From NCBI RefSeq assembly GCF_021869535.1, contig NW_026262690.1, positions 91,016,001 to 91,080,000 on the forward strand: 64,000 bases of DNA. The letters are read 5' to 3'. Below, one piece after another: positions 15,601 through 62,410 of this stretch. The notes under the pieces are model-generated. The model saw only the letters and a list, made by a program, of their open reading frames with translations. It did not search any database and was not told where the DNA came from. The position numbers and the translations under genes are program-made. This DNA comes from Mytilus californianus (Eukaryota). Positions within the stretch are counted from its first letter, which is position 1; each line of letters starts with the position of its first letter.

Positions 15601-18600
15601 GAAAAAGACAGGCCTTGCCTGGGCCTATTAGCTGACCTAAATTTCAAACTTCTCTTTGAATTGAAACAAGGTTGCCATCGAGGAGTGTTTTCTTAATGAA
15701 AATTTCTGAATGATCTATGATATTGACCATGTTGACCACTTTATACTTCTGATGAAACCTATCATTATATTTGAAAAATTTAAGAATCAGAATATAATTT
15801 TAAAGTTTTTGAAAACAAATCTTTTAATTTTTTGCATCTTTAGTTCTCACTACATGTAGTTCATTTAACATTAAGATAAGTTATTAATTTTCATTAACAA
15901 TATTTCCTTCCCATGACAAAACTGTAGGATATGACTAACTAAAATTATAAAGTAAATTATTACTTTGTCATGAAACAACAATATTCTTCAATTTTTGATT
16001 GCTGGAAAAAATAAAAACAATTATTTTCTTACCTGGGAATTACCCTTTATCCTTTTCACAAATTCATTGATTGAGGTACGTGTTGTATTGTCTGACTTGG
16101 AAAATCCATTGACGGTTTCTCTGTCCAGTTTTCAGTGATTCACTTTTGAGTCATCAGCAGTTTCCTGTTGCTTTTTTCACAGGATGTCATATCTCCCTGT
16201 TATCAATAAATAAGTTTTGGTTTTCCTTATTTGATCGTTGATAAATTGCGTAGGAGGTTTATTTACTCTTATTGATTTATTTTAGATAATAAAAATATCT
16301 GATATTGGGGTCATTAAAATAAAGATCTTTTTGTTCAGCTTCTGATGTAGCTTCCTTTAGATGCATTTTTTTGTTGTTCAAAACACAAAGAAAGTCCTCA
16401 TGTAGGTCAATGTTTATTTTTTAACAATTATTATTTTTAAAGACAAATCAAGACCATGAGATGGATCACGTGAGACAACGTCTCATGAAAAACTGGAAAA
16501 ATCTTTTCATAAAAAACATATGACTTGTAAGACATTCAATCGTAACTTCATCTTTATAAATATCAACTTTATATTAAAGTACATGGTCATTCTGATAAAA
16601 TATAGAAGATATTTATTGTCTTTAGTATGTTTGGGATACTTGCCACTGGACTTAAGTCTAAAAATGATGATACATGTACTTATAGTTCAAATAATTAAAA
16701 AAGTAAGTAATGAATATTTTTAGGTTGTTTATTGTAAACAAAATCACTAGATCTTTTGGGGGTTATTTTTTTAATCTTTTACAAAAGTTCATAATGAAGA
16801 TTCCATCAAAAGAACTTTTAATTTTACGATCTCAATCCCATCAAAATTACCTCTAAATTATCAACAGTCACTTGTTTGAAAGTTTGAAATGTTACAAACA
16901 AAATAATGTGATCAGAATTTAAAGTGTTGTTTGCTTAACATCCAGTGGACGATATTTCATGCATATCAGGACAAAATAGTATAAAGTGTGAATTTAAATC
17001 AATATGATATTGATCCCCTCATGAATATTTTTTTAGCAGTAATAAAAATGTTACAAAAAATTCTAAAGTTTTAATAACTCTCTTGAAACTTTAGATGAAA
17101 GTCAAATTTTCTCCCTTAAGGGTGCGGATTAGGCAACTACCTTTCTATGTTTATTTTGCTTGTAAATAAGAATTTTTAGGTAAAGATTGTTTGCAAAAAA
17201 AAAAATTTTTAATTTTAGTTGACAGGGAACTATGTACGGAACATAAAGCACAAGGAAATAACATCGCAAGATATCAAAGTAGCAATATGTGCAGATCAGG
17301 TCAGTTAAAAGTTTTGCAGAAGACATATTTATATGAATTAAAAAAATGCTTTATGCCAACTGCAACAATCCTAAAACACATTAAAAAAAGACTAAACATC
17401 AAATGAGCAGCTAACTGTCTTCAACAATATTGTCTACGTACATGTAAGGTATGTTAAAAAGCTCTAAATTGTACATCGTGAGCCGTGCCAGGTTATAGAT
17501 AAAAGTCACAGCCATCTGCCATCGACACCATATTCTCTAAGGGCTATTCCATTAAAATGTATGTGGGAGGGTAGGAAGGGAAGTTTAATTATTGAATGTG
17601 GGTCATGGGTCTATTTTCAGTATGCGTCTATTACCATTATGCAATATTATCTAAAAAATGGTTCTTGGTTGTAGGGATATTTTGAAAGTCCCTTCCTACC
17701 CTCCTACATACTTTTTAATGGAATAGCCCTAAGTTTAGAGCATTGTTATTAACAATCTTGCAGTTGTAAAAGAAGTGGAGGTTTGAAATGTTAATATTGT
17801 GATAGAGTGAGTGAAATGAGGAAAATTGAATGCAATTTCAAGTAGGGTGGAGGTTTGGGGAATGCTTAGTGCTTGTGTCTCCTTAGTCCACAGGTTAATC
17901 TGCCACATATGAGATTATCGTTATGTTGCAGCTAATGACTTTTAGAAAATACTGTAAACCAACTAATTTTCGTGAGTAGAAAAATAATGTGAATATAAAT
18001 CGTGGAGAATATGTGAAACTTCTGTCTTACCTAACATAAATACATGAAGAAAATTAAAAAAACCGCAAAAAAAAATCGCTGTGAAGTCTGCTGAAAAGGG
18101 CTTAATGCAAAAATAAAATAGCCACGAAAATAAGTTGGTTTAAAGTAATGTTATCTTTATCATGTTTGTGGGTGCTGTACCTGACCTATTTTGACATTTT
18201 TTATTGTTTGGGAAGCATGTTAACAAATGTATTTTACTCTTCTGTTCCACAGGTATTGATGGATATGTTCTCTCAAGAGGAGGAGGTTTCCATGCCAGAG
18301 TTAGAGGAACCAATCAGACTGGAATCTCTTACTTACGAAGAAATTGTTAAAGATTTTATTTTTGAAGAGACTCAGTATATGAGAGACTTAAATATGATTA
18401 TTAAAGTGTTCAGGGCTCCGTTTGTTAAACACTTTCCAACAAGTAAGGTAATTATGTGAATAGTTCGTACACTTTTTAAAATTAGTCAGAATTTTGGAAA
18501 ATATTTTTTCAGGTACATGTATTTGGGAATTGTGAGGTAAATCAAACTGTCAACATTTTCTTCATAAAAAAGTTAACATTTCTTTTTTAAGTTGAATAAT

Positions 18601-21600
18601 ATTAATTGTTTTCCTTTTAAATTAAATTGAATTATACAAAAGATTTGTTTAGCCTCTTAGCATTTATTTCAAAATTCGGACAAAAGAGCAATTATTTGGT
18701 ATGCTTGAAATTTATTGATAATATTCCATATTTTTACAAAAACAGATGATGGAGGAAGGCAATTGCTTCTCTCTTTTTTATTGGCAGAAAAGACTCAATA
18801 CAACACAAATAAAGTGACTTTAATGTTTATATTATATATTGTAGGATTTAGACGTGATCTTCAGCAATATCTTGGACATCTATGAGTTTACAGCAAATTT
18901 ACTGAGTTCTGTAGAGGAACAAGTAGAACTTGCTGCAGAAAATGCCAAACCAGAAGTTGGAATTTGTTTTCAAGATATGGCTGAGGTAATGTAACATTTG
19001 TGTCTCAGCTGTTTCTAAGAAAAATGGTGAAATCAAGTCTTTAAATGAAATAAAATCCATGATTACATCAGTGACATGATATTGGTGTTATTTTGACACA
19101 ACTTTAGTAGGGTTTAAACAATAGAAGAGATTACTTATAATAATGTTATCATGATTGTTGATTCTTGATTTAACATTTCTCTCATTTTGATATTATTGTT
19201 TGGAACAAGATGCTTTTGACAGACAACACTTTAAAAATAAAAATAGATTTAAATGAAACTTCTTTGATTATATATCCTCATGTTGTTATTTTGCAAGTGA
19301 TCATAATAATTGTGTTCATATGTAAAATACAAACCATGGCCTCTTATTTGGGAACCTCTGGGATTGGCAACATAATAGAACGCAGCCATTCTTATGTTAT
19401 AGATTTCCTTTTATGCAATCATTTTAACTGGTTTACATGGTAAACTATTTTTATTCGAAGATAGTCTATTCAACCAGTGAAAAATTTGAATTCAATATAT
19501 GTCAAAACAATGCCAATATTTTAATACCAAAAGATAAGATACAAATGTGTTGCCAAATTTTAAGAAATTACAAACTGACTCTTGTTTTCCTCTCTGAATT
19601 TGATGACCAGGAAATAGTACTTTAATATTAATACAGAGACATGTAAAACACTTTTAAATGAGTTATATTGTGTTTTAAAATAGAATATAATATTTACTTT
19701 TAGGCAGAAGAATTCAGTGTATATGAGAAATATGTTGATGACATGTTAGCCCCTCATGGGAAAGAAAGGCTCAACATACTGTTAAAAAGAGATGATCTCA
19801 GTAAAACATTAGAGGTAAGTCAAATTTGAAAGAGATGATCTCAGTAAAACATTAGAGGTACTGTGGATTCATTTATTTTCGTGGGTACCAATTTTCGTGG
19901 ATTAAGGAAAACTTATATTTTCGTGGATATTTAATTTCGTGGTTTTGCCGAAGTCTGCATATAAGCCTAAGGAAAATTTGTTATTCGTTGAACATTTAAT
20001 TTCGTGGTTCACCAGTACCCACGAACTCCATGAAATTTGGTATCCAACGAATAATAATGAATTCACAGTAAGTCAAATTTGATGTAGATTATCTCAGTAA
20101 AACATTAGAAGTTAGGCAAATATAACTCAGTAAAACATTGGAGGTTATGCAAATATAAAAGTGAGGATCTCAGTAAAACATCGAGGTAAGTCAAATTTAA
20201 TAAATGATCTCAGTAAAACATTATAGGTTAGTCAAAAAATAAAAGAGATAATCACAGTAAAACATTAGAGGTTAGACAAATATATATATGTTAGTTGCTC
20301 CTTAACAATGAAATATTAAACTTCGAAAGACACTTATACAGCAGAAAGCATTACTGTGTTAACCAATTTTTATGCAACTGGTCTGCATTTAAAATTTCCT
20401 CATTAGCTTCTTATGGATTTTTTTGTGTACTGAAATGGGTATTACTTTGGAGAAACAGCTTGTTTTATGTGACTTCAATCGAGGTTCACTTGAGCAGTTT
20501 TGGTTTCATCTGCTGTCATTTTTTAATAGCTCTCAAAAGATTTGATCACTTGCAAATAAAATGTTAACAATTGTAAGTTGTGAACTCTGTTTTAAATACT
20601 GAAGGTATATTTTTTAATAGCTCTCAAAAGATTTGATCACTTGCAAATAAAATGTTAACAATTGTAAGTTGTGAACTCTGTTTTAATTCTGAAGGTATAT
20701 TTGAAATTTTGACCAGAAATTACAGTTAAAGAAAAAAAGTACTGTTATGGGCAAAACCTATTTATAAATGGAATAAAAAGTTGGAATAGCAAATCATATA
20801 AAAAGAAGATGTGGTATGTTTGCCAATGAGACAACTCTCCCCATTAGACCAAATGACACAGAAATTAACAACTATAGGTCACTGTATGGCCTTCAGCCAT
20901 GAGCAAAGCCCATACCGCATAGTCAGCTATAAAAGGCCCTGAAATGACAAATGTTAAACAATTCAAACGAGAAAACTAACGGCCTAATTTATGTACAAAA
21001 TAATGTACAAAAAACAAATATGAAACCCAGCAACAAACGACAACCACTGAATTACAGGTTCCTGACTTGAGACAGGCACATACAGAATGTGGCGGGATTA
21101 AACTAGTTTGTTGGCACCAAACCTTCCCCCTAACCTGGAACAGTTGTGTAACAGTACAACATATAAGAACAAACTTTAAAAATCAGTTGAAAATGGCTTA
21201 ACTCATGAGATTGATACAAAGAAGAAAAACATCTTAACAAAAACATTGGACTGGACGTTGCAGGGTATTTATACAACTCCACAACAAAACAGACACTAAG
21301 AACAGATTTGAGAGTACTCGCAGTGAATATATGCGAAGCTTATATATTGACAGGGAAGTGATTTACTACATGGTATATTTTTATGAGACACAAACAAAAA
21401 GAAATGAAACAAAAGTTAATGCACTTAAAATTATAAAAACAAATCACGTTAAGAATGCACTGCTTCATAAATATTTTGTTATAATATGTATATTAGATTT
21501 TTCCAATTATATAAAATTAAATATAAGTCGTCTCACTCCTTTCACAAACAAGTGGAAACATAGAGGACTTGTTTATGACTGATTTTACTAAAAAGCTAAG

Positions 21601-24600
21601 AAACATATGAAAATGTGAAATGATTTATGGAAGTGAAGCAAAAATAAGGGGGGATGAAGGAAATGAGAATCATAAAACAAAATTTGTGTGGCCAAAGTGT
21701 GGCAAATAGTACTGTATATGTATATATATATATTCTCTTTTTTAGGTTGAGGGGCATGGATTCAAAGATGCCATGAAATTTGTCTTGCCAAAACTTTTAC
21801 TAGGACCCATTTATCATTGTTTACATTATTTTGAAGTCATAAAGGTATGTATTTTAAAAATCTAATATACACTATTATAGGTTATAAGAGCTATTGTCTT
21901 TTTTCATGTGTCCATATTGGCATATTTTCAACATCCTTAATTGTAGTGTCTTATAAATATTTATACCGAGGTAATATTAATTACAAATGAAATGCTATTG
22001 AAAGTTATTTGACTTAATTTAATCTAATTTTACCATTTTAGATATTCTGGAAAAAATTTAATATTTCTTTCATGAAAAAATCATATAATAGATAAACTTT
22101 TATATATTGAAAAAGTTACATGCAAAAAACATTACAATTGTTTTCACATTTAAATTGTCACTTGTTACTCCTATTTAAGGCTCTGATGACTGCCAGTTCA
22201 AGTGAAGAAGATGAAGATTGTTTTAAGCAGGCAGATGGCTTGTTGATGGCACTTAAAACGATGCTTGAAAGAAAATTCAGTGGAAATATGCCAAAGAAAA
22301 AGCCATGGTATGTATCAGAAAATGAATACAAAATAGCATCAAGAATGTCCTAGATTCAAGGGTTATAGGTTTCAGAACAAGTGAGAATTATAACTATATC
22401 AACTCAAGTTATCAGGGCTGCTCCATTTAAACATTAATGGTACCCAGGGAAGTCACTGAAACTTGGGTAACCACCTATAGAAGAAATTTATGAACATCAC
22501 ATTTTCGCTTTATCAAAAAACATTTGACACCTACACCTAGTTGAGATTTAGAATTGCCTGATCTATGGTTTTCATTTATGTTTTTATGGAACAACCATAC
22601 TGATAAATGAGCATCTGGCTTGAATTTAAATTCATTAGTAAGAATAGACGTGAAGAAAATTCAAGCCAGTGTAAATATAATATCTGTTTATCAGAATAGA
22701 CATGCAGAAAATTCAGATAGAATATTATCGGATTTATGAAAATTAGGAATGTCTTATTTTCAATATTTAAATTACTTTTATTACATTTGTTACTATTTGT
22801 ACCATTTTACCTAGAGAAAGTATTAAAGTAGACATCTAACATGTCTAAGTACACACATGATCTATACAGGTATTTTGCCAGACAGTCCTGATTTGAATGA
22901 TTTTCTATTACAATGAATTGTGGCAACAGTGTATTTGTTTGTTATTTCTTCACAATTTTTGGAAATACTTCTCATGGTGATCAATGGGTAACTCACAGGA
23001 AAATGGCATTTGTCATTGGCATGCCTGTAATAGTAAGAATATGTCGGCCTATTTATCAAAATTACTCAGTAAACACTATTTTTACAGTACCATTATTTAA
23101 AAAATGCTAAAGTCGGTACATAATTTTATTTTTATGAAAGATGACACATCACAATTTGTAATATATCAACTGCAAAGAAAGTGGGAGAAGACAAGTGTTG
23201 TTCCGAGCAGTGTCTACAATTACTGAAGTTTTTTTATGAGCTCATTTAGATGAGCACCAATATGATTAAGCACATGTTAATGCAGTACATCTTGTTTCCT
23301 GTAGGCCCTCCCCTTAGTCATTGTCTATGGACTTCTGACATTTTTGCCTAATTTACATTTTAGGCAGGACATTATATTTTCTTATGCCTAAAGAAAATTT
23401 GGTTTGTGAATAATGTGTTGAAAATTTGAATTTAATATGTTTCAAATTTTAGGGAAACGTCGTTACGATTACATGGCAGAACCGGGAGACAAGCAATAGT
23501 ACAGAAAATGACAGAATTACAAAAGAGTATTGATGGATGGGAAGGAAAAGATATCTGGCAAAGTTGTAGTGAATTCATTTTAGGTAAGATGTTTTTTGGG
23601 TTAGACTTGCATCTCAGAACAATCATATGGAGCCAAAACATCTGTTTAAAATAGAGAGGCGAAAGATACCAAAGGGATATTCAAACTCATAAGTTGAAAA
23701 CAAACTGACACTGCCATGGCAAAAAACAAAAAACAATGAAAAGGGAAACAACAGTACACAAAACACAACATTTAAAGCATTTAATTCTTTTAAAAAAGGG
23801 AAACAGTAAATTTCATAGATTACTTCATAAGATCATAAACAAAAGGATGCAACATAAACAAATGAAAGCATGTCCATATATAATATATAGAATTAATAAA
23901 CTTAAATATTAGTATACTTTTTGTCGAACCTTTCGACTTTAGTCGAAAAAGCGAGACATAGCGATCCTACATTCCGTCGGCGTCGTCGTCATCGGCGGCG
24001 TCCACAAATATTCACTCTGTGGTTAAAGTTTTTGAAATTTTAATAACTTTCTTAAACTATCCTGGATTTCTACCAAACTTGGACAGAAGCTTGTTTATGA
24101 TCATAAGATAGTATCCAGAAGTAAATTTTGTAAAAATAAAATTCCATTTTTTCCGTATTTTACTTATAAATGGACTTAGTTTTTCTGCCAGGAAATATTA
24201 CATTCACTCTGTGGTTAAAGTTTTTAAAATTTTAATAACTTTCTTAAACTATCCTAGGTTTCTACCAAACTTGGACAGAAGCTTGTTTATGATCATAAGA
24301 TAGTATCCAGAAGTAAATTTTGTAAAAATAAAATTCCATTTTTTCCGTATTTTACTTATAAATGGACTTAGTTTTTCTGCCGGGAAATATTACATTCACT
24401 CTGTGGTTAAAGTTTTTAAAATTTTAATAACTTTCTTAAACTATCCTGGGTTTCTACCAAACTTGGACAGAAGCTTGTTTATGATCATAAGATAGTATCC
24501 AGAAGGAAATTTTGTTTTCTTCCAGTTAACATTACATTCAGTCTGCAGTTAAAGTTTTTAAACATTTATTAGATTCATAAACTATCCTGGATTTTTACCA

Positions 24601-27600
24601 AACTTGGACAGAAGCTTCTTACAATCAAAAGATAGTATCAAGAGGAATATTTTTATTGATTTACTTCCTCATTTTTGTTGAGCCTGCGATTAACAGAAAA
24701 AGTAGGCGAGACACTGGGTTCTGCGGAACCCTTACGAATTTTATTCTAAAAGAGCACTAATTTGGAATAAATCTCCATAAAAATTTTACCATCAGTAAAA
24801 ATGAGTTCATTGACCAAGTGTATTGCTGAGTAACAGTGCTTATTTTTTGTGATCAAAATTTTGCCATTAAAACTGAAGAGAACCAAGTTTGCTACATGTA
24901 AAATTTATTTCAACAGATGGTGTGTTGAACAAGTTCTCTACAAGATCAAAAACTACAGAAAGATATGTGTTCTTATTTGACGGACTAATTGTTTTGTGTA
25001 AACAAAATACACGAAGATCATCAGTCACAGGAGTACAACCAGAGTTTAGATTGAAAGAAAAATTCCAGATCAGGAAAATGGAAGTTGTTGATCGAGAAGA
25101 TACAGATGGTATAATACATGAAATTTTGAAATTTATACTTTTGCTTTAATATACCAAATCTTTTCAGAGTGTACCAGAAGAATTTGCATGTGCAGTTTTT
25201 ATTTTTATCAGGTTCTGTAACAAGCTGAAGATAACTTGATCAGCTACTAGAAAATGAATTATATCTGGAAATTAACTTATGGTCTTCAATGATAGACCTG
25301 TCATATATATATCAAGCTCAAAATGCAGTGTTCTAAACAAAAATAGAATGTGCTTTCCTTTGAATAAATAGAGAGGTGGAATACAATTCAATGAGACATC
25401 AATCCAACAACAAAAAGAAATGCATAAGACCTTTTCAAGTTATATATTTTCCATGGAAAAAATATACAGGAAAATGGGGAGATATAGTAGCACTAGTCTT
25501 CTTAATAAAAACATTTTATTCAAAAGTACTATGGGTCGATGCCACTACTGGTGGGGGTTTACTCCCCGAGGGTATCACCAGCTTAGTCAGCACTTCAGTA
25601 TATGATATGGTTAAAATTATAAATTAATTGTTAGCAAAACTTTGATTTCTTTTTTATACGACTGCAAAAAAATTTTGCTGTAGTATATTGGTATCACGTC
25701 TGCGTCAGCGTCGTCCGAAGACATTTGGTTTCCGGACAATAACTTTAGTTTAAGTGTATGGATCTCTATGAAATTTTATCAAAAGGTTCAATACCACAAA
25801 AGGAAGGTTGGGATTGTTTTTGGGGGTGATGGTCCCAACCGTTTAGGAACTAGGGGCCAAAACAAGCATTTTTCTAGTTTCAGGACAATAACTTGTGTAT
25901 TAGTATTTTGATTGCTCTGAAATTGTACCACAAGGTTCAATACCACAAGTAGAAGGTTGGGATTCATTTATGGGGTAATTGCCCAAACTGTTCAGGAATT
26001 GGGGGCCAAAAGGGTCTAAAACAAGCATTTTTCTAGTTTTCAGACAATAACTTGTGTTTTAGTGTAATTTGTAGCACATTTTACAAAAAAGAAAGTTTCT
26101 TCAAAATTAATATTTTTGGAAGAGGGGGTTAAAAAAAAATTTTTTTGAGTGGCAATTTTTTTTCCTCAAAAGAAAATTCTCTTCAAATATTATTTTTGTT
26201 TGGAGGGGGGGTAAAAAAAAATTTTTTGGGGGGTCAATTTTTTTTCCCTCAAGATTTAAGAACTTGTCACTTTTCCAAAGAAAAAAATTGGGGGTCACAA
26301 TTTATTTTGCTAATTCTTTGTATAGTCTGACAACAGATTTACTAAGTATTGCGCAACAACACAGTGAATTGCACAACAGCAAGAAATCTTCAATTGAATA
26401 TAAATTCAAATCATACAACCAATTTCAAGTTCTTTGACTACATTTATTCTGTGATAGAAACCTGTAATGTGTCAAATATTTAATTACAATCCAAATTCAG
26501 ACCTGTATCAAGCTTGAATATTGTGTCCATTTTTGCCCCAACTGTTCAGGGTTGGACCTCTGCGGTCGTATCCAGCTGCGCTTGGCGAAGCAGTTTATAT
26601 TGAAATACTAAGGATTTTCTACCCCAGGAATAGATTACCTTAGCTGTATTTTGCAAAACCTTACTTAATTTTGGGTCCTCAATGCTCTTCAACTTCGTAC
26701 TGTATTTGGCCATTCTAACTTTTTTGATGGGAGCGTCACTGATGAATCTTTTGTGTATCAAACGTGTGTCTGGCGTACAAAATTTTATCCTGGTATCTAT
26801 GATGAGTTTATTAAGTATTAGTGAGCAATATCTCACAGTACAATGCACATCTTGTATTTGCAGATTGCAAGCATGGATTTGAACTTCAATCAAGAGATAG
26901 TCCCAGTCACTGTGTTCTTCTTATGGCTAAAACTGCTGAAGAAAAAAGTAATTGGATGGCAGCTTTGATATCTTTACAAACTAGAAGGTAAGTTAAATGA
27001 CTTTAACCTAATAGGTTATTGCTGATAACATCTTTAAATATTAAGTCAAAATGTTTAAACTGGAATTGAAAGATATAATTGATACTGTAAATTCAGAAAT
27101 TATTGTGAGGTTTTTATAAATGTGAAAAGTACAACTCGCTGAACATCACAATAATAAGTACTCACATTCTGATATCTGATAGATATATATATGTATACAG
27201 CTTTTCCATAAATCGCAATAATTAAACTCGCATTTTGTTCATTCTTCAAAAATTGCAATAATAAATGCATGCAGTATTTCTGAATTTACAGTAGATGTTT
27301 TTAATTTCATGTATTGGTGTGTAACAAGAATGATATAAAACATTTTTTAAAATTTCTTTTGGAGAAAAAAAATTGTTTCAGATCAAATATCTTCACTAAG
27401 TGATACTTTTTCTGATTGCATTGTAAGCAAGGTAGATAACTTATTATATATCAAAATGGAAAACAATTGTGTGGTAAAGAAAGGGTTTTTAAATACAATA
27501 CATTTTAGTATTTATCAATTCTAAAGTAATGTAACATAAAGTGCAGGTTATTATAGAAATATTTTTGTACCGTGTTTTAAATTTGTTTTAGATTTCATTG

Positions 27601-29789
27601 TAAATGATATTTTCAAGGGAGATAATTTATTATAAGTCTCAAGGTTCAAATCAATGAAAAAAAGAAACTTCCTAAAAAAGAAACAGGGTTTATCACTTTA
27701 ACCTTTCTGAACAATCAACAACCATTATAACAAGGCCATAAATCTACATGGCTAAAACTATCACATTTGGACAGTCAACAAATTAGAAATGTACTTGTTA
27801 TGTATCAATTAGGAGCCAAACCTGTATATACATGGAAGAGAAATATGTTGCCTTTATGAACAGGTGCCCTTTATACAAAGGTTTTTTTTTCAAGCTTTGT
27901 ACATGTATGTTTACAGTAACTTTATTGACAGGTGTTTGCATGTTTATTTGTTGCTTAAAAGTATGGTAATAAAGAAATGAGAAATTTAAAAAAAGACTAT
28001 ATGAATATTTTGCCTTTGCAGTATGTTGGAGAGACGATTAGACAGTATTTTGAGAGAAGAAGACCTTATGCAGCCATTACAACTGCCACCTCCACAAATC
28101 TACAGGTAACTGTTATACTGTCGATTCATTGATTTTCATTAATTGAAGAAGAAAAATCATATTTTCCTGGTTTTGTATACAAGTTTATAGAAAATTTGTA
28201 CTCTATGAAAATTTTAATTTGTGGTTCACATGTACTCACAAAATCCACAAAAATTGGTATCCAACAAATAATAATGAATCTTCAAGAAGCATACAAAAAA
28301 TAGTTTTTGATAACTTCTCAAGATATGAATATTTACATTGAATCATATTTGTTTGGTATTTTCTCTTTTTCTTAGTAAAGTTTCTTTCTTTTATTGATTT
28401 AAAAAGAAATCTTACTCGCAAATAACTAAACTATTATCTGCTCTACTCTGTTTAAACAATAAATATGCTGTTGTGATCGGCAGGAAGTTGTAATAACCAG
28501 TTCTATTTCAATTCACCGTTTCAGAATCTTGTGCATTCTGGGTTATATTTTCAAAAGAGAACACCAAAAGGCTTTGATTGGCTTACAACGTCAAAAACAA
28601 TTGAAAGTCAACAATGACCTGACATTGTTTTTATTTTGGAGGACAAGCAATGAAATTACCCTGGTTCATAAAATTCTGAAACGGCGAATTGAACAGAAAT
28701 TACATGCAACAACATCTAACACACATTACTTTTCAGATTCGGTGAAAAAGATTCAGAATCCAATATTGTGATGGAAGATAAAGAGAAAAGACATAATCCA
28801 ACAGAAAGTCCATTAATCAAAGGTGGATTACTGCTGAAATTGATAGAACGGTTAACATACCATATGTATGCTGAACCTAAGTTTGTTCGGACATTCCTAA
28901 CTACATACAGATCATTCTGTTCTCCTCATGAACTCCTCGATCTTCTTGTTGAAAGGTCAGTCATTTAATATATATATGTGTCTTTGACTGTGTTTGTCTA
29001 AATTTTAAAGCTATTTTTTCAAGGATGAAACAACAAAAGTGTAAAAACTGAGACACTTTTTTTTATTACACATTACTAGACTTCATTTTAAGAACAAATG
29101 AATTGAATAAGTACTGTAAGTCATTGTGTTTAAGATTTTTTTATATCCAAAGTTTATTGTCTGTAAACATAACAATTATGCAACTATTGATTTTCTGACA
29201 CAAAATCAAACTCAAACAACTACATTTAGAAACAGTTGGAATATTTTTATTAGAATATGATTTTTAATGGCATTTTTTTCATCATTTGCTAAAGATTTAA
29301 AATTTCTTGAATTAACAACATATTTTTGGTCACTATTTAGGTTTAATATTCCTGAAAGCCATATTACTCAAACTGAGTCCAAAGATAATGAAGACGTGAA
29401 GATTCAGAGCAGAAACGACATGCTGAAAAGATTCCGAAAAGAATATGTTAAACCTGTTCAATTCAGGTAACGTGAAAATTTATTCCTGAACCTGCATTAT
29501 GAATTCATAGTTATAAGTTAGAGTAATAATCATAGTGAACAGTGTGGTACAATTGAACTTCAATTTTTAAGTGATGAACAGAATAGAAATTTCCTGGTAT
29601 GCAGAATTTGTTCAAACTATAAAAACCAGTATCCAAAGAACAATTATTGTTTCTTCATCTGCCTAAATTGGTACCAACAAAAATGAAGAAATCTACAGTA
29701 TGCATGAGAATTGTTGAAAGAAGACTAAGATTGAAAGTGTGTTAATAGGACTCAATTGGAGCTTTTAGAGATCTATGCACATGAGAAAC

Positions 29790-29820
<31 letters not shown>

Positions 29821-32800
29821 AAACAACAACAAAACAAAACAAAATAAAAATTCTATTCACTCGTGGCATTGATAAGAAAAATTTATTATTATTGAATTAA
29901 CAGGTTTGTCCTCCTAAAAAAACAGTAAAGATTCTTGTATCGATAAGAAAGAAATTAAGAAAAGGAAAATTGAAATGGAAGAGATCAGTTTATATAGGTT
30001 TTGATTTAAGAGTAAAAATGCAGTTTTCTTTCAATATTGAATAATACAAAATACTTTTGTCTATTTCATTAGAGATTGGTTTTAGATTGAAACATTGGTT
30101 TTAAATTGAAACATTGGTTTTACATTTTAGAGTTGTAAATGTATTACGACATTGGGTTGATCACCATTACTATGACTTTGAGCGTGATACTTCATTAATT
30201 CATAAACTGAAGGAGTTTCTTGGTAATGTGAAGGGAAAAGCCATGAAAAAGATGGCAGAATCAATAATTAAAGTCATTCACAGACGGGTAAGTAGTTAAT
30301 GTTTATCAAAATTGTATTTCTTGAAGACAGTTTCTTTTCCAATATGTTTTATTTTTATGACCATAATATTCAGTGTGAGAAGTAAAAATTATTTTTAGTA
30401 GAATTATTATTCATTTATTTCCAATATTTGGATATGAACATGTATATTCATTTGATACAAGTTTTCACATACTTCAATTTCATCAAGGTATAACATTGCT
30501 TTTTTTATATTTTCAATTTTTTTCAGTTTATAAATAAAATGAATTATAAAGCAAATGCAAATATATTATCAGACTTTAGGACAGCACTTAAAGACTTTTT
30601 AAGTATTTCCAGTAAGATAAACAGACTCTTGCATTACGAAAAAGAATAACTATTGATGAAAAAATGGTCTTTGTCAAGATTTTAAATCTACCTTGAAACT
30701 GGAAAAAGGTTCCATTTATCAAGGTTACATTCTATTTCAATCTGATAAAAATGCTGTTTACATGCTTTGCTTACAAGAATTTGACTTTGTCCGCTTTCTG
30801 TTTTAAAAACTTTCAAAATCCTCTAGTTTGACCGTAATGATATACATCTTCAAAAATTTGAGGGTTATAATTTCACTGGTTGGTGTTGTAATTACTAGAA
30901 TAGAAAGTAGAACAGAGTGTTGTCAGATTCATGTAAGGAAAGCATCCACATCGGGGTCCGTATTGTCAGTCTGATTTAATTTTGATGTTTTCTTTTTTTT
31001 CTCTTTTGTTAAGGCTGTTTCAACAAAGCATTTCTATTTTCAGTTTGAGAGTATGAGTACAGAAAGGGAGTTAACTCTTCAAAAACAGCCACCACCAGTG
31101 GAATGGCATATAACTAAAAAGAGAGAAGAGTTTCATTTAATGACGGTTTGTAACTTCTTAAACTGTGAACCTAAATACTACATGAAAATCTGTTCTATCA
31201 AACATTAGTTTCATGTTAAAAATTAACTTAATCTCCCATCTCTTTTTCAGCTTAGAATATTGGTAAAAAAAGGACTTTATTTTACCAAATGACATAAGGA
31301 AATCACAATTAAAATCCTTCTTATGAATTTATATTGTATGATAGACACTTCTAACATTTGTCTAAGCAATGATGATGATGGATGACTGTTTAATCAAGTG
31401 GCATGTTAAATGCATATTCTGGACGCTTAACATGAACATGTTAATATAATATGAATATAAACTCTGCTTTGTAAAAGACCAACACACTGAGCTGGATTTT
31501 TAACATGCTATTTTACAAGGTAACAGCACTCAGGAAGACATGTAACCCTACCAGGACACATTATTCTTACTCCAAACTGACCTGTCTTTTCTCTTGCTAT
31601 TTAATACAACTTGCATAGCGGAGAAGCAGCCAACACCAATTTTAAAGTCTTTGATTTGACCCTGCTGGGGGGAAACAATAAACCTTTTTATGCCCCAGTC
31701 ATAGGGGAGGGAGCATTAAGGTTTACCCTTGTCTGTCTGTATATCGGTTCCTATGTCCAGAATTTAGTTCTGTTCTCTAACTATAGTTTGCCTCAACCAA
31801 ATGTAATGAAACTTATACACATTGAGTCAGATCAAGTTCAAATTTGGTTGGTATCACTTTTACCGTTCTGAAGTTGTGCCACTTCATAAATGGAAAAAAT
31901 GCTGAATTTTTCATTTCCATTCTCTAACTTCAGATGACCTCAACAAAATCTTATGAAACTTATACACAATGCTTATTTCCACAAAACACAGATTAAATTC
32001 AAATTTTTGGGGGTCGTCACTTTTACAGTTTTCTAGTTATATCCCTTTATAACATTATATGTAAGCGAGGCATCATCTGTGTCCCATGTCTCCATTTATT
32101 TTTTAAAGATACATAAAAATTTCAGCCAAGTGAAAAAGGCAGCCTTGCAAACCGTCCATGCAATTTGCTTTATGATTTAATGTTCAATGGATAATACAAT
32201 CAATTACTGAAAATTCAGAAATGTTTGCAGATGATTTTATAATTGTGAAAATTACTACAGAAAAGGCATCAAAAAGATAATACCTCAAATTTTAAAATTT
32301 TGAAAGCATTATTTGTATACAGCATGTACTCAAATCCCATGAATAAATGTATGCAAAAATTTGTGAATTTACAGTATATAGACGAAAACTGTGCAACAAG
32401 AAGAAAATATACTGACTATATTCATGATATTTGTCAATACTAGGAAAAGACACAAGTTAAAAAATCATATCTTGTATTTTCAGCTTCATCCGATAGAAAT
32501 AGCTCGACAGATTACATTGTTAGAATTTGATTTGTACAGAGCTGTTCAGCCGTCAGAATTGGTAGGCTGTGCTTGGATGAAACAAACCAAACATAAAACT
32601 GCTCCTAATCTCCTAAAAATGATCAGCTTTACGAATAATGTAAGTAGTGTCCTTGTGAAAGGTACAGAAAAGCTTCATACTGATATCAAATTTGTGAGTT
32701 ACATATTACTATGGTAAGAAGTAAAGAGATCTGATCAATGAGATGGTCACCCATCAAAGATATAAGGCCACTGACATTGCAATAGTGAAGAACAGCATGT

Positions 32801-35800
32801 AGCATATTGCATACTCATCAAATTGAACAAACAATTCAGCAGAAACAAGGATGTTCGCTACTCTGTTTTAAAATAACAAGCTTTTTAAAAGACTGTTATA
32901 GATGGATAGTATATAAATAAAGGAATTTAAAAAGCAGAAAAAAATGAAGGGTCCGTGTGCTTGTTTTCGAGATATAAGCCATTAAAAATTTGGATGGAAA
33001 TAATTTTCTCTAGATTTTTCATACATTTAACATTGGCACCTTTTTTCTTTTAAAAAATACAAAAAAATAACAAGGATTTTATAGGATTTTCAAATATGGC
33101 TTTTTAAACTATATGTAATAAAATTATGAAAAGAAAAGTAGGGGTTAGCGGGGAAAATTTTGTAATGGCACTACATGGATAAAACCAAAGGATTCCGAAT
33201 ATCTGGCAAAAATTCAAAAGCAAGAGGAGCGAACATCCTTAACTGCCATTACTTCACCAATGTAATTAATTGAATTGCAAATTATGTTTCAGCATCAGCT
33301 TATGATTGAAAATGAGACTATAGTACAATTACGTTTAAAATTGTGTGTGAAATTACAGGGTGAATACTATGATATACTCAAGTTTTGAATGTACTATTAT
33401 TGTGCTTGTCAATTAAGATTGGATTTGAAAGCACCTTGCTGAACTGAGTTCAAACTCACTGTGTTACTCACAACATCAGTGTTGACAGGCTAGGGATTAC
33501 TGAAGCTGACTACTCGGCCACAGAGACTCAGATGTTCCTATGAAGCAAGGTGTAGTGAAGTGGTTGATTGAATGTTGATTGCTTTGATAATATCCAGTAT
33601 ATCAACAATAGTCTTACCATGCAAATTCAAATGACTGGCTTATTTGTTTCCTAGCAAATTTGTAAATATCAAACATAATATTATCAGATCCACTAGGAAA
33701 AATATCGAATTTATTTTATATTTCAGTTCACATTTTCTTTGGAGAAGTGTATTATTGAATCAGAAAATTTAGAAGAAAGAGTTGCTGTTGTACATAGAAT
33801 TATAGAAATTTTGTTAATATTTCAAGAACTGAACAATTTTAATGGTGTTCTAGAAGTGGTTAGTGCAATAAATTCTGCTCCAGTTTACAGACTGGAGAAA
33901 ACTTTTGAGGTTAGTGTGGTCATTATACTGTTAATCGTCGTCCATTTGTGTTATTTTAAAAGTATATGTTTTTGTTTATAGCAACTTCCAATGTATGATG
34001 GCAGATTTTCTAGTGAATTCAATGAAAAAAAACATTGTTTTCTTGCTTTTTTATCTGAATTGTACTAGAATTACAGCATCAAAACTTTACAAAGATAACA
34101 GAACAAATTGATTAATAAATTTGGAATCTAATTTCAGAAATTTTTTAAGGTATGTATAGTTGTTGCAATTTTGGAAAATGCTATCACAATTAAAAACATA
34201 ACTTTATTTATGCGAATTCAATATAATTTAAAAACGCAAAATTTCTGAATTTATACAAGCATGATATAAGCATGAGGATTATGTATAAAAAAAATTGCAA
34301 GACTGCAAATGTAGTTATTTCTTCGATCCTGTACTACCTTTTCATGATACTTGTATGATGTTGTTGTTATGTGTTTCTCCAAGATTTCAATAAGAGAAAG
34401 GTGCTTTTGATGTTGAAAAAACATTTTAATGCCATTTAAAAGGGCAATAACAATTGAAAAGAGCAGATTGAATGACATCAACAAAGTTGCACAATAACAA
34501 CTAAAAAGGTTTAAATACCTAAATTGAAATTGACCTTGAATATAGAAAACACTGCATGTGAACAATTTTGAAATGTGAAGAATGATGATTGATTGATTGA
34601 TTGTTGATGAACTACTTAAGACTACTTGTCCCTGAGGTTTAGAATGTGAAGTGCATAGAGAAATATAATCATACTGTGGATTCATTTATTTTTTTGGAAC
34701 CAATTTTCGTAGATTGACGAAAAGTATTATTTTCACGGATAATAGATTCAAATATCACGAAAATACAACTTAAAAAGGGTTTTACAGCAAATCTTCTCTT
34801 CAGTTCAAGTGGCCTTAAGGTCACGTGAGCTTTTGCCATCACTTTGGGTCCATCGTCATTGTCTGTCAGTCCTTGCAAACTTATTAAAAAATCTATTCCT
34901 TTGAACTACTGGATCAAATGTTACCAAACTTTATCCAAATGTTCTGAAGTATACCTAGTCTGGTGATTTGATCCATCAACAAACCTGGCTGTTGTTAATA
35001 AATATAGAACAATGGGGTAAAATTGACCAGCAGGTCAAGTTCTATCTCCTGCTAAATGTTTTGAAAAATCGGACAACCCATTTTACAATTATCACCCCTG
35101 ATTTTGTTTTCAGATTTCCTTGAACCTTTTGGTTAAATTTCATAGAGATCCATACACTTAAACTAAAGTTATTGTCCGGAAACCAAATGTCTTCGGAAAA
35201 ACACCAACTAGGACGACGACGTGATAGCAATATATGAACGCAAATTTTTTGCGGTCATATAAAAATTACAGGAGTTATTGCCCTTGAAAGATGGTTTTAA
35301 TCCATTTTTTTTCTTTTTTGAAGAAATCTTTGTAGATAGAGAAAAAAATTTAAAAATCAAAGATAACTACCACAATAAGATCTACAAATAAGTCAACATG
35401 GCTAAATTGTTAAAAAAAAAAACACCTGTTAGGAGTTGTTGCCCTTGAAAGATGATTTTTTTATTTTTTGGTTATTGTGCTGCTTTTGCTAAAACTGTAA
35501 TAGGTAGTGGTAATCAGTAAAAAAAAGCAAATTGTTTAGCACAATAAGGTCTATAAATCAGTCATCATGACCGAAACTGTCAAAAGTCTCCTTATAGAAG
35601 TTATTTCCTCTGAATGATTTTTATCCATTTTTTGGCAGTTTTGTCAAAAAATAGTGGAGTTGGAGAGAAACTTTAAAACATAAAAAAGATCTGCCTGTAA
35701 GTCAACATGGCCAAATTGTCACACTAGTAATAGGATTTAATTCCTTTAAACTGATTGAAATAAACAGGAAAAAATAAATATCAAAATAACTTGTTTTTTA

Positions 35801-38800
35801 CCAGTTTAGTTATTCAGGCTCCTAAGAGCCTCTTGTTTAAAAATTTACTTAGAGAGAGATCTCCAATTTAGAAGGTTTGAAAAGCAGTGATTTCAACATT
35901 TATGAAACAATTTTTGAAATGAAGAAAGTATTTCTTATCAATTTCGCCACTTAAATTTGTAAAAGTAAAAAAATCACTTGTACAAATTTTTACCTGGCAA
36001 CAAGTTTATGACCCCAAGCTTATCAACATTCACAACAGATGTCATAATTTGTTGTTACAGGTAATCACCTTATCCCATGGATCATTACTGATCATCAAAA
36101 TTTATTCATACAAATAGAATTGGTCAGTCAGCATTTGTCATTTCGAAAAAAAAAAATTTCATGCGACCACCTGATTTGCAACCTTTACTGTAGTTTTATG
36201 ATGAAAATGCCTTTATGAACGTATTTAAAGACATCGTTTTACTTGAATTCAGTTAAAAATGTTTAATCCAGACATATTTGTCTTTGCCTTTTAACTTTTG
36301 ATATAAAAATAACAAAACAGGTGGCCATTGATTGTATTGAGTTGTGGTGCAAAGTTAAGAGGGTCTTGGTAGGGGTTTGGGAGGAGGCTTTGGTCATCAT
36401 TTTCTGTATTCTTTATTTTTATACAAATTTTCTCTTTTCTGTATACTTAAGCACCCATTAATCTCTCTTCTTCATTTTTTGGCCCATTTTTCTCTATTCC
36501 TTATTTTTTATTTTAAAGCATATTCTCTATTCTATCGCATATACAGACCATAAGTTAATTATAAGGACAGAAACATTGACTAATAGATTCATTATATTAG
36601 TCCTATTTAGTCCTTGTTTTGAGACGTAAAAATAAAAAAAAATAAAAAAACAATATGTAGCTTTCGAAGAAAAACAGCTGTTTTGTTTTAAAATTCATTG
36701 TAAATTTTTATTTGTATAGTATATATAAATAAGAAAATGAAAGTACACGTTTTTTTCATGTATTTAACCCTAAACAGTAACTGCCCTATTCCTATGATGT
36801 TAAGCTGTTACCCAAGAAAGGTAGTATCTTATCACTCAAAAGTGACTTAAGCCCTCAAAATCCTAGCTTAAACCCTGAAAATTTGACACTGAGACATAAT
36901 GTTTTGGAAAATAATGTTTTGGAAAATAATGTTTTGGTTGAATCACACATGAAAATGGCTGTGATGTCTAAAAAATATATAAATGGTAAAGTGTTGATTA
37001 TGGTTTATATTACAGGCAGTTCCTAATAGGTTGATGAATGCTTTTGAAGAAGCTAGACAACTGAATTCGGATCATGGCAAAAAGTACATGGAAAAATTAA
37101 GATCCATAAATCCTCCTTGTGTTCCCTTTCTTGGTAAGTTGTCTTTTTTATGAGGATTAAAACCATCAGTAAGATTTTATAGTCTGGCTTTTGATATCCA
37201 CAGATGATTTCGTTCTGATTGTTAACCAATTTTTCATTGGTTTTCTGAATTTTTTTTCATTACAGTTTCTTGATTATACCATATGATTTCCTCAGGTACA
37301 GCCATTTCTGCTTTTAATAAGAGCAAAATCATTTCTGAATATCTAGGTGTTAGAATAGAACAATATTCAAAGATGCCATTATGAATAAATACATTACTGC
37401 TTAATCTGTTTGTCAACTGAAGCAAATATTTGATATGATATTTTGTGGACTATTAAGTATACTTCACATAGCTTTCTATTCAACTTTAGGCCAAAAATAA
37501 AATTTAAAATTGTTTGATGTTGCCTTCCTACCCAACTCAATTGGTAACAAGCAGAATACCCTAAAAAATTTATGACACAAATTGTCTCAAATTTAAAAAA
37601 AAAAAGATTTTTCCTTCTCTAACGTTGTTTTCTTGTCTAAAACATGTAACTTATGCTGTTGCAAAAAAAAAAAAAAAATCCCTTCCTACCTACCCAACTT
37701 TACAAGGCATGGGTAGACAACATCAAACAAAGAGTTTCTTCAGGGTGGCCTTAACTGTTCATTATGTAAAACAAATGTGAAATTGATATTTGTAGGTATG
37801 TATCTGACAAATATTTTGAAGATTGAGGAAGGAAATTTAGATTTTTTACCCAATCGTCCTCCTGGGTTAATCAATTTCAGTAAGCGACGGAAAGTAGCAG
37901 AAATCACAGGAGAAATTCAACAGTATCAAAATCAACCATATTGTTTGAGTATTCAGCAAGATATAAGGGTAAGTTCACTGATAACAAGCCAATCTAAAAG
38001 TTTTTGAGGGTAGTAATGATCTTTACCGTCAGGCGTAAAACGGTCATTTTGGGCTACCGTTAGCATCAAATTGGTTAAAATTTTATCGTGATTCGTCAAA
38101 ATATCCTTATCGTGATTCGTCAGTGGTCTAAAATAATTATCAGGGGTGTGGAAATGCAATGCCTGACTCGCCTGACTCGTACATTTGACAGACCGGACAA
38201 GCAGTTTTTTGTGTCATTGTTGCCCGTGGACTAGTAAAAAAATGTTGCTTGATAAAGGACAAATAGTATTCAAAAATAAAGTGAATAGAGGATTTTAAGG
38301 GAAAAGGGTGGGTTGGTGCAAAAAACAATCCAACAATTCATCAATTATTTTGTCCTAATGAAAATGTACATTTTATCGTCATACACCTAAAATTGCCGTT
38401 AACGTCATTTGGCAAGATTTTTTACAGTTATTCATCATGAAGGTACCCCCATTACGACCCTCTTTTTTGTTATGAATCATATTATTACCGCCTTAGTGGT
38501 CTTGTGTTCGCCTTGAGTGCAGGAGGTCGTGGGTTGGAACCCCGGCTGGGTCAAATCAAACACTTTTTAATTGGCATTTGCTGCTTCTCTGTTAAGCATC
38601 CTGCATTAAGGGGTAAGAGCAAAGACTGATTGGCTGGGAGTGTTAAAAATCCAGCTCAGCATGTTGGTCTTTTACAAACAGGGTTAATATTCATATTACA
38701 TTTATCTGTTCTTGTCCTGAATATGCATTTAATTTGCGACTGGATGTTAAACACCATCCATCGTCATCATATCATATTAATTACAGAAGATGTCCTGATT

Positions 38801-41800
38801 TTATACATCATGTCTTATTGATTCCGGAATATCCAAATTATAAACAATATCATTGGTCAAAGAATTTTGAGCAAAAAAAAGAATTGACTTAGATCCATAA
38901 GAAAATTGTAATGACTTGTTCCAAAAGTTTTGTGATGTAGAGATCTGAATTTTGATTGACGCAAAAGACTTTCAGTAAAAATAATTAGTGAACCTGAATC
39001 GTTATGATTTTCTGTCAAATAGTATGAAAATAAACAGAATGTTATGAAACAGGACCAATATAATTGTGTATTTATGATAAATATTGAGTAAGAAATGATA
39101 ATTTTGTCTGAATACATTTTATATTTTTCCTAAGATTGTTATGGTTTTCAGACTAATCATCACCCATCAAATTAAAAGTGAATGTTTTCTGATCCCACCC
39201 AATAAATTCTAGAACAGATCTGATATGTAACCACATTTTCCAAATTTTCACAATATAATGTGCATTATTTAATATTTGCAGGAATATCTTGAGAGTTTAA
39301 ATCCCCGTGAGGAATTGTCAGAGAAAGAATTTAATGATTACTTATATGAGAAATCGTTAGAGATAGAACCAAGGAACTGTACAAGGCCTCCAAAATTTGT
39401 ATGTATATTAATACACAGTTGAAAGCAAAGTCATTTTGGAATTACATATATAATGAAAAAAAAATTCTCCAGCTGATATCATGATTACATTCTTGATGTG
39501 ATACATTCACAAAAATAATGTAGATGTGAGCTTCATATGCACTAAATTAATATTTTCTATATTGATTGTTTAAAAAATGGCAACCACTTTGTTGATATTA
39601 CTCTTATATTTTACCTATGAAAGTTGGGGTTAACCGTTAGCTTAAATTGCTGCATAACTCAAGAACATTCTTTTTCATAAGAGAAATACATGGAAATACA
39701 TGTATATACCTGTAGTAATACAAATGAGATGAGATTTTACAAACACTCTTATTCTTAAATAGATTCTTTTTTTGAACAATGTACCTCCGTTGCAATGCTC
39801 ACCTCAAGAACTGGATGTTGTGGATCCATGGCTGGGTCAAACTCAATACTTAAAATTAGTATTTGCTGCTTTTTTGCTAAGCACAGGGCATTAAAGAGTA
39901 AGAGTGAAGACCAGCTTGTCACAAAATAATGTGTCAGGGTATAATGACTTGTCTTCCTGTGGACTATTACCTTTGAACTAGGATGTCAAAAATTTCAGCT
40001 CAGCCTGTCAGTCTATTACAAAGCAGGCTTCATATTCATATGACATAAACATGTTCTCATTTTGAATATATATGCATTTAACTTGCCACTGGATGTTAAA
40101 TAGCCATCAATCATCATCTTTTCAAACATTTTATACAAAATACATAAATTTATGTTAACCTTTTGAAAATCTGTTTCAGGCAAGAAAAACAGACTATCCA
40201 TTGAAGTCACCAGGAATCAGACCCATTACAGCAAAACATTTAACACAGAAACATGCATCATTTCCATTTAACGCAACATTTGGTTCAATGAGAGAAGATG
40301 CGACTGATGTAGAAGCATCCTCTCCGCATAACACAACACCATCAACCCCTACCACACCTCTGTCACCGCCACACAATGGAGACAGTGTGTTCTTACCAGT
40401 CACAATCGGCCAAGGCATAGGTAATGTTGTTGCCGAGGAGGCAGATATTATAAATTATTTAAGGTCCCTATCATAAGGGTTTCTAACACATCACTACATA
40501 TAGGTGCGTTCGACTCCTAATCTTAATTAACTAGGATTTTCAGTTTTCATACCGAAGGTCAGTGCTTCTCTCCAGGCACTCCAGCTTCCTCTGCCAATGA
40601 AAACTAAACACTACGAAATAGCACAATTGTGCTGAAAGTGCCGTTAAACACCAATCAATCAATCAGTCAATCTTACCACTAAGTTACCAGTCACAATTGG
40701 ATAAGGCAAAGGTAATGGTATTGCCAAGAGGCAGATCTGTTTAATCTCTATGTAACAGATCCCTCTAATACTGTGGATTCATTTATTTTCGTGGATTCCA
40801 ATTTTCGTGTTTTGTGGAAAACTTGAATATTCGTGGATATTTAATTTCGTGGCTTTGGGAAAGTCTGCATGCATTCCTTTAGAAAATTGGTAATTCGTTG
40901 ACCATTTAAATTTGTGGTTCACCTGTACCCACGAAATCCACGAAAATTGGTATCCAACGAATAATAATGAATCCACAGTACCTCCACGCAATAAAGACAA
41001 GTGTGTTCTACCTTTTCATTATCCATAAGGGCATATGTTATGTTGTTGCTCAGGCATATGTTATGTTGTTTCTCAGGCATATGTTATGTTGTTGCTCTGG
41101 CATATGTTATGTTGTTGCCAGAAAAGCAATGTGTTCTACAATTCACAACTTGCTAAAGAGGCATATTTAAGAAATCATATATAGTCACTTTCATAATGCA
41201 CTTTTACCACCCCTTAACAATTGAGAGGGCATGTAGTAACTATCTGCCAAGGCTTAGGTAAATTGTACCTTTTTCACCTCTACATGATGTGGTCAGTTTA
41301 TTTATACAATTCCTTTCTTTCGTTGGACGAGTGGTCTAATTAGTCGAACTACTGTATCACTAGCCTGTCAACACTGAGGTTGTGAGTTCGAATCCTGCAC
41401 GGGGCCTGTGCACTTGACTCCAATCTTTAATTGACTAGGATAAAAGTAGGATTGTCACTACCGCAGGTCGGTGTTTCACTCTGGGCACTCCTGCTTCCTC
41501 CACCAATAAAAACTGACTGCCACAAAATAGCATAATAGTGTTGAAAGTGGTGTAAAACACCAATCAATCAATCTTTCAGATTTTCTCGTATCTTGTATGT
41601 TAATATGAATATAATTTTTGTAATAAAATGGATACCAAGAAAGTCAGTCAAAATTGATAACTTTATGTATTTGAATATTTTTAGTAATGAGACAAAAAAT
41701 ACTGATATAAAAGATTGTTGCCATGTGATTAATTAGATTAGTTTAATTTTCTGCATAATTATGAAAACCTGATGTCCTGTTAGACAAATAAATATATAGC

Positions 41801-54903: not shown

Positions 54904-55283
54904 AATTGTAATAAACGGACAACTGTCTGATTAACAAGGAAGTGACTCAGGAAACAATTTGACAGCCCAGCGGCAAAATTCTCTGATTGGATTGAAGACT
55001 TCCGAGATTAGCGAAAGAAAAATTGATGTACAACGCTGAAGGAAAATTAAATGTGAATGATACAACAGAAATATAGAAAAATATTCAAATGTTATTGATA
55101 TATTTATTATTTCATGTAAAGTTAATGCATAAAATAATTTTAATATCCATTTATTTGCATTCTAATTTTATGTTGATGTGTGCAATCGGTTCTGACCTTC
55201 ACCTTTTCTCTTCCTAGTGTAAACAGAAAGGGCACCTTTCAGTAATTCAGATAACATTTTTGTTGTGTATTTAGTAATATAAC
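54904..55283. promoter_or_regulatory. Putative bidirectional promoter between C1orf198-like and CHP1-like genes
   Basis: 380 bp between divergent ATGs. GGAAGTG at 54938-54944 overlaps TGACTCA at 54943-54949; ATTGG (CCAAT) at 54986-54990; ACTTCCG at 54998-55004. Confidence 0.6.
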
Positions 55284-55350
55284 ATGGGAGCTCGAGCATC
55301 TATACAGCTGCAAGACGAGGAGATTGAAGAAATACAAAATGAAACAGGAT
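55284..55350 (+). CDS. CHP1: CHP1-like exon 1
   Basis: MGARASIQLQDEEIEEIQNETG+T; donor GTAAGA. Confidence 0.93.
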
Positions 55351-62102: not shown

Positions 62103-62204
62103 GTCAGTATATTTAACATAAATGTACACAAATTTAAAGTTTGTTCACCATTGCAAATAATGAAACATTGTTCTGTTCATTTTCTGTCGCAAAAAATGTG
62201 CTTA

Positions 62205-62410
62205 CTGTAAATTCAGACATTATTGCATACATTTATTATTGCGATTTTTAAAGAATGAACAATTTGCGAGATTAATTATTGAGGTTTCTGGAAAAGCTGC
62301 ATACAGATATAGGTATCAGATATCAGAATGCGGGTTCTCATTATTGGGATACTCACCAACTTGCATTATTCCCATTAATCAAAAACTCGCAATTATTTCT
62401 GAATTTACAG
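62205..62410. mobile_element. TA-target MITE (CTGTAAATTCAG family)
   Basis: TA-CTGTAAATTCAGA ... TCTGAATTTACAG-TA. Confidence 0.8.

Follow-up and report, generated by a model that had tools for sequence, protein, structure and literature searches.

Methionine in place of the allosteric-site tryptophan 729 in the SOS proteins of Mytilus californianus and other molluscs

In autoinhibited human SOS1 (Son of sevenless), Met269 of the DH domain makes hydrophobic contact with Trp729 and Leu687 of the REM domain, Thr266 lies opposite Lys728, and Leu690, Val697, Ile718 and Ile736 pack against Ile733 (Lepri 2011, PMC3118925). The class 1A Noonan alleles T266K, M269R/T, K728I, W729L and I733F fall in this network, and K170E is also a Noonan allele (PMC3118925). 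W729E abolishes the allosteric binding of Ras, and W729L is a gain-of-function allele that raises signalling (PMC3762125; PMC4722452); W729 is both a Noonan site and the residue that is mutated in the field to turn off SOS positive feedback. The same interface has been weakened by design in the SOS1 mutant E268A/M269A/D271A (bioRxiv 10.64898/2026.06.12.731952). Bandaru et al. (2017) raised the possibility that feedback from Ras to SOS is a late, vertebrate feature, and showed that Ras of a choanoflagellate fails to accelerate human SOS (PMC5538825). Here we describe the SOS gene of the mussel Mytilus californianus, in a 64-kb stretch of 64,000 nucleotides that we call the window (contig NW_026262690.1, positions 91,016,001 to 91,080,000, with no N). 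Its protein has Met at position 729, as does every mollusc SOS in our comparison.

The coding part of the gene runs from 6595 to 42595 on the forward strand, to which all coordinates below refer, and consists of 24 coding exons that encode 1248 residues, with the stop codon at 42593-42595. The model was built by tblastn, with the SOS of Mytilus trossulus as guide (P0173, 'son of sevenless homolog 2-like'), and by searching for splice sites. Each junction is AG/GT, the frame is intact, and 1220 of the 1248 residues (97.8%) are identical in M. trossulus. Orthologues had been reached by comparing the exon-16 peptide with a representative library and then by a word search with the full-length match, M. 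trossulus being the closest. The SOS exon matches once in the 1.65 Gb assembly, which indicates a single copy. Domain content was read from the M. trossulus orthologue as a stand-in. Its full-length alignment covers human SOS1 residues 4-1044, and Pfam finds the DH domain (PF00621, E 1.1e-15), the SOS-type PH domain (PF22697, SOS1_NGEF_PH, E 8.8e-17), REM (PF00618, RasGEF_N, E 2.4e-30) and Cdc25 (PF00617, RasGEF, E 1.4e-51). The histone-fold domain is present as well: the alignment to PDB chain 3ksy_A begins at residue 4, and exons 1-4 lie inside the window. By the codon table, the Phe equivalent to F929 in the catalytic hairpin is retained (37127-37129), and the last exon (42174-42592) encodes a proline-rich C-terminal tail with PxxP motifs for Grb2, including PPPVPPRKD. 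A maximum-likelihood gene tree of 75 sequences (FastTree) places the window SOS as sister to that of M. trossulus, within bivalves and within molluscs, and follows the species tree. The window gene is a single-copy SOS orthologue with histone fold, DH, PH, REM, Cdc25 and proline-rich tail.

Residues were numbered after human SOS1 by phmmer against 3ksy_A (residues 1-1049, in its own numbering), which aligned exon 6 with residues 241-288 and exon 16 with 689-740, and codon assignments were cross-checked with a codon table derived from the 24-exon model. Coding exon 16 (30131-30287, frame from 30132, bounded by ag/gt) spans human residues 688-740 and encodes the REM helices with the allosteric-site residues. 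Its codon at the position of W729 is ATG (30252-30254), two changes from TGG; the codon that follows is GCA, for Ala at human V730 (30255-30257), and near the start of the exon GTA gives Val at human L690 (30135-30137). The preceding REM exon, coding exon 15 (29341-29466), ends in Phe at human L687 (29462-29464) and then two bases of R688; Phe at 687 occurs in 14 of 22 other invertebrates as well. On the DH side, coding exon 6 (18845-18985, ag/gt bounded and 100% identical to M. trossulus) encodes the helix that docks on REM, human residues 241-288. It carries Gln at human T266 (CAA, 18920-18922), Leu at human M269 (CTT, 18929-18931) and Ala at human D271 (GCA, 18935-18937). Thus, the human-type packing pair of Trp729 and Met269 is replaced in mussel SOS by Met and Leu, while the rest of the human-type site is present, with R688, R694, K728 and I733 kept and Phe at 687.

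These readings bear out much of the initial annotation, which had claimed M729, L269 and Q266: direct reading, the phmmer alignment and the codon table agree on all three. The human numbering given there proved correct against 3ksy_A; its exon numbers 6 and 16 agree with the 24-exon model, and the control residues it had listed as intact (D140, D169, W432-E433-G434, C441, R552, R688 and F929) are so in the full-length alignment. The contact between W729 and M269 in the DH-REM autoinhibitory interface, on which it had relied, is documented (Lepri 2011, PMC3118925). It had also allowed that transcripts might read TGG. Reads and contigs from four runs were placed on positions 28000-33900 (5901 bases), a span that includes exon 16, with exon 6 outside it. 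A spliced contig from an independent 2017 study follows 29339-29464, 30129-30286 and 31043-31139 with zero differences over exon 16, so the transcript carries ATG, not TGG, at 729. In the raw reads of a 2026 run, exon 16 has a depth of about 5 and no variant is listed. Further splice junctions in the RNA lie at 31144/32483 and 32639/33727.

We next compared the window protein with 135 SOS sequences in one alignment, which yielded sets of 33 mollusc and 92 full-length non-mollusc sequences. The mollusc set holds 22 named sequences (nine bivalves, including the protobranch Solemya; eleven gastropod species, from Patella and Lottia to heterobranchs; and Octopus) and ten more nested among them. 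Q266 and M729 occur together in 33/33 mollusc sequences. Outside molluscs, Q266 occurs in 0/92, and W729 is present in 91/92, the sole exception being the nemertean Tubulanus, with Gly. Those that keep W729 include Lingula (a brachiopod), Capitella, Owenia, Priapulus, chelicerates, myriapods, insects, echinoderms, hemichordates, amphioxus and vertebrates; the drosophilid Zaprionus is among them, in line with the statement in the initial annotation that Drosophila has Trp. Common variability of W729 among invertebrates, which the same annotation had named as a possible objection, is not what this comparison finds. In the best 150 representative matches, residue 729 is W in 114 and M in 14, the remainder being I, C, G, Y or L, and every fragment with Met at 729 has mollusc-like motifs. 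In the gene tree all molluscs group together, and a single change from W to M on the mollusc stem is therefore sufficient. The best reading of this distribution is a single origin of W729M, V730A and T266Q on a stem shared by at least bivalves, gastropods and cephalopods, and their retention since then.

Several individual sequences deserve mention. Babylonia areolata has two SOS genes on separate chromosome-scale contigs, each with Q266, V269 and M729. Another SOS gene, gastropod-like and very long in its introns (ENA ERZ26859072, contig ctg12092), has Ile729 (KAMRNIARSI) and keeps Q266, V269, V299 and G307, and is possibly a second, divergent copy. Two fragments with Tubulanus-like motifs, KGKAMKKGVDSI and KGKAMKKGADTI, likewise have Gly at 729, and on these sequences Gly729 may be common across nemerteans. 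In the ant Anoplolepis gracilipes, a 'son of sevenless-like' paralogue on a long branch has Cys729, where ant orthologues (Odontomachus) keep Trp, and a spiralian-like animal, known from a metagenome contig, has a compact SOS gene with Cys729, A266, M269 and Ile687.

We then asked which DH residues accompany M729. The initial annotation had suggested a co-evolved pair, W729M with M269L, as a possible rewiring of SOS positive feedback or basal activity, and an alignment of orthologues as the way to date each change and look for covariation. The dating part held, with W729M assigned to the mollusc stem, but the coupling did not: W729M is mollusc-wide, and residue 269 varies among the 33 molluscs (V 15, M 7, I 6, L 5) without being tied to it. 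Met269 is found in heterobranch gastropods, Batillaria and one scallop, and Leu269, within molluscs, only in Mytilus, Pinctada and two relatives; outside molluscs the residue is often Ile in insects and Ala in annelids. M269L is, on this distribution, a local conservative variant and not the partner of W729M. The DH change that matches M729 without exception is T266Q. Alongside it stand V730A (A in 31/33 molluscs), L690V (V in 29/33 molluscs, L in 80/80 others) and mostly D271A/Q (A or Q in 28/33 molluscs, nearly always D/E elsewhere). All the mollusc changes lie on one branch and count statistically as a single event.

Conservation across the whole protein sets the change in context. Among 462 columns conserved in non-mollusc invertebrates and vertebrates, five are refixed in molluscs (M166I, N442S, R489K, W729M and V730A); that only these five moved, W729M and V730A among them, indicates a change in excess of chance drift. 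Four columns in the whole protein hold a residue that is fixed in molluscs but essentially missing elsewhere: Q266, V299, G307 and M729. In the window gene, V299 (19734-19736) and G307 (19758-19760) lie in coding exon 7 (19704-19814). Looser thresholds add I263V, T270A, L690V, K170Q and H827F as mollusc signatures. The end of coding exon 4, in the histone fold (17285-17299), encodes Ile at human M166 (17285-17287) and Gln at human K170 (17297-17299), and N442S (23568-23570), beside C441, and H827F (32628-32630), in Cdc25, are further changes of this kind; all four are mollusc-typical at positions invariant or almost invariant elsewhere. Around the allosteric site, R688, R694, H695, H700, Y702, K724, M726, K728 and I733 stay the same in 31-33 of the 33 molluscs. 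Judged by the published human contacts, the mollusc-specific changes fall on the DH helix face and the REM surface that faces it.

How does this state compare with those already described? Human SOS1 (PDB 3KSY, 1XD4, 1NVV) and SOS2 have the same domain order as the mussel protein, and share with it F929, the lock between R552 and D140/D169, W432-E433-G434, C441, R688, R694, K728 and I733. Mussel SOS differs from human SOS1 by W729M, V730A, L690V, L687F, T266Q, M269L, T270A, D271A, A299V, F307G, K170Q, M166I and N442S. The Noonan class 1A alleles alter the same DH-REM positions as in molluscs, and in W729L, as with Met, an aliphatic residue replaces Trp. However, those alleles are single human substitutions that release autoinhibition, whereas the mollusc state is fixed, multi-residue and phylum-level, and T266Q is uncharged, unlike T266K. 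The engineered mutant E268A/M269A/D271A has a partial natural counterpart in Mytilus, with Ala271 and an altered 269, but all molluscs (33/33) keep E268 and 269 remains a large hydrophobic residue. Other invertebrate SOS proteins (Zaprionus, Lingula, Capitella, Priapulus, spiders and echinoderms) have the same architecture as the mussel protein and differ from it in keeping W729, with mostly T/A at 266 and M at 269. Tubulanus (G), the Anoplolepis paralogue (C) and the spiralian-like contig (C) have lost Trp at 729 as molluscs have, but by another replacement residue, without Q266 and with M or I at 269.

We consider it probable that molluscs underwent an ancient and selectively maintained remodelling of the DH-REM and allosteric surface. 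Under this explanation, the surface for DH docking and allosteric Ras-GTP binding would have been remodelled rather than lost. The bulky contact between Met269 and Trp729 would have become an aliphatic or Met-Met contact, with neighbours changed on both sides (263, 266, 270 and 271 in DH; 690, 729 and 730 in REM) and the remaining site residues invariant. The surface is probably still in use, with altered affinities for DH docking, for Ras-GTP, or for both. The gain-of-function allele W729L indicates that human SOS1 can be active with an aliphatic residue at 729, so Met there need not abolish Ras binding. The sequence, its transcription, the phyletic pattern and the conservation are shown directly; from them we infer that DH docking and Ras binding are still present and that the changes offset each other.

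Some observations weigh against a maintained remodelling. The evidence on mollusc SOS is at the level of sequence. The mollusc changes share one branch, so their co-occurrence is no evidence of coupling, and three independent losses of W729 elsewhere came without a matching change at 266 or 269: Tubulanus (G729) retains T266 and M269, the Anoplolepis paralogue (C729) resembles its orthologue there, with V266 and I269, and the spiralian-like contig (C729) has A266 and M269. The gastropod-like gene with Ile729, which keeps Q266 and V269, likewise speaks against a general rule of coupling. The mollusc-signature columns are enriched in the published DH-REM network (hypergeometric p ~0.001), but we rejected this as independent support, as the enrichment is driven by 266 and 729 and otherwise includes only L690V. 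Structure prediction can also be listed here. An AlphaFold2 model of M. trossulus SOS 198-1046, from a 47-sequence alignment, had a mean predicted local distance difference test score (pLDDT) of 78.8 and a predicted template modelling score (pTM) of 0.57, with a low-confidence domain arrangement. In Foldseek the whole chain matched 1XD4 with a template modelling (TM) score of 0.54 and a root-mean-square deviation of 10.7 Å, and REM-Cdc25 alone matched SOS1/SOS2 with TM scores of 0.90-0.94. The predicted model thus misses the 1XD4 domain arrangement, but is uninformative either way. A complex prediction of the M. trossulus DH-PH (201-552) with REM-Cdc25 (569-1046) returned 0.00, 'no answer', which bears neither way on docking.

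The alternative that fares best is that molluscs lost or strongly weakened the allosteric feedback of Ras-GTP, leaving the M729 site to serve DH docking only, or nothing. The central place of W729 in allosteric Ras binding in human SOS1, the proposal of a late, vertebrate feedback (Bandaru et al., 2017; PMC5538825) and the repeated losses of W729 among protostomes would all fit. Yet almost every other invertebrate phylum retains W729, which argues for a conserved role well beyond vertebrates; M729 and the site around it are invariant across molluscs, where a discarded surface would look otherwise; and the Noonan allele W729L raises signalling rather than abolishing it. We regard such loss or weakening as unlikely, though a serious alternative. 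The tolerance of G, C, Y, L or I at 729 in other lineages, and a similar drift among hydrophobics at 269, invite a second explanation, in which any large hydrophobic residue suits 729 and the mollusc state, frozen in by accident, left regulation unchanged. Near-neutrality of this kind sits poorly with W in 91/92 non-molluscs and M in 33/33 molluscs over class-level splits, which point to strong selection on each, and with V730A and L690V at positions invariant elsewhere, and it strikes us as quite improbable. An assembly error, a pseudogene or a divergent paralogue has a negligible chance of explaining the data and is excluded by the intact 24-exon frame, the single copy, the matching RNA and the same residues in 22 named mollusc proteins.

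A broader proposal, of which we are doubtful, is that the regulatory surface of the Ras-SOS switch may be wired differently in molluscs as a whole. In one version that we propose, a compensated 'Noonan-like' DH-REM interface (Q266/A271 with M729/A730/V690) would give autoinhibition another set-point; in the other, positive feedback by Ras-GTP would be weaker or absent. Were the proposal true, mollusc SOS would be a natural experiment that separates DH occlusion from allosteric activation. The phylum-wide replacement also supplies a concrete set of substitutions to try in human SOS1; in molluscs the Trp was replaced once and the new state held for hundreds of millions of years, with a handful of changes in the facing DH helix. 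It bears, too, on the question of Bandaru et al. (2017) of when feedback from Ras to SOS arose: the Trp is conserved far beyond vertebrates, yet is dispensable in several protostome lineages. A literature search found no published account of a W729 change in molluscs or other invertebrates, or of W729M in mutational scans, although the pathway-scale variant map of PMC13692094 may include W729M. Nor did it turn up a paper on the mollusc-wide replacement; the proteins themselves are already public under ordinary SOS names.

The window holds other features. Downstream of SOS, a second gene on the forward strand (55278-62210) has exons that encode MGARASIQLQDEEIEEIQNETG, NQIIRLYSRFESLDKSGNGFL and VAFRMYDLDGDDKISRDELLAVLHMMVGANISEDQ, the last exon matching EF-hand models; its sequence suggests a calcineurin-B-homologous (CHP-like) EF-hand protein. 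Within SOS, introns 17 and 18 (31743-32136 and 32728-33318) show huge read depth in all four runs, up to ~48,000 in one of them, with many loose ends and internal joints; this depth is that of high-copy dispersed repeats within the SOS introns and not SOS expression. Similar open reading frame fragments recur in several SOS introns (19856-20079, 34669-34770 and 40769-40879), which suggests a dispersed repeat family.

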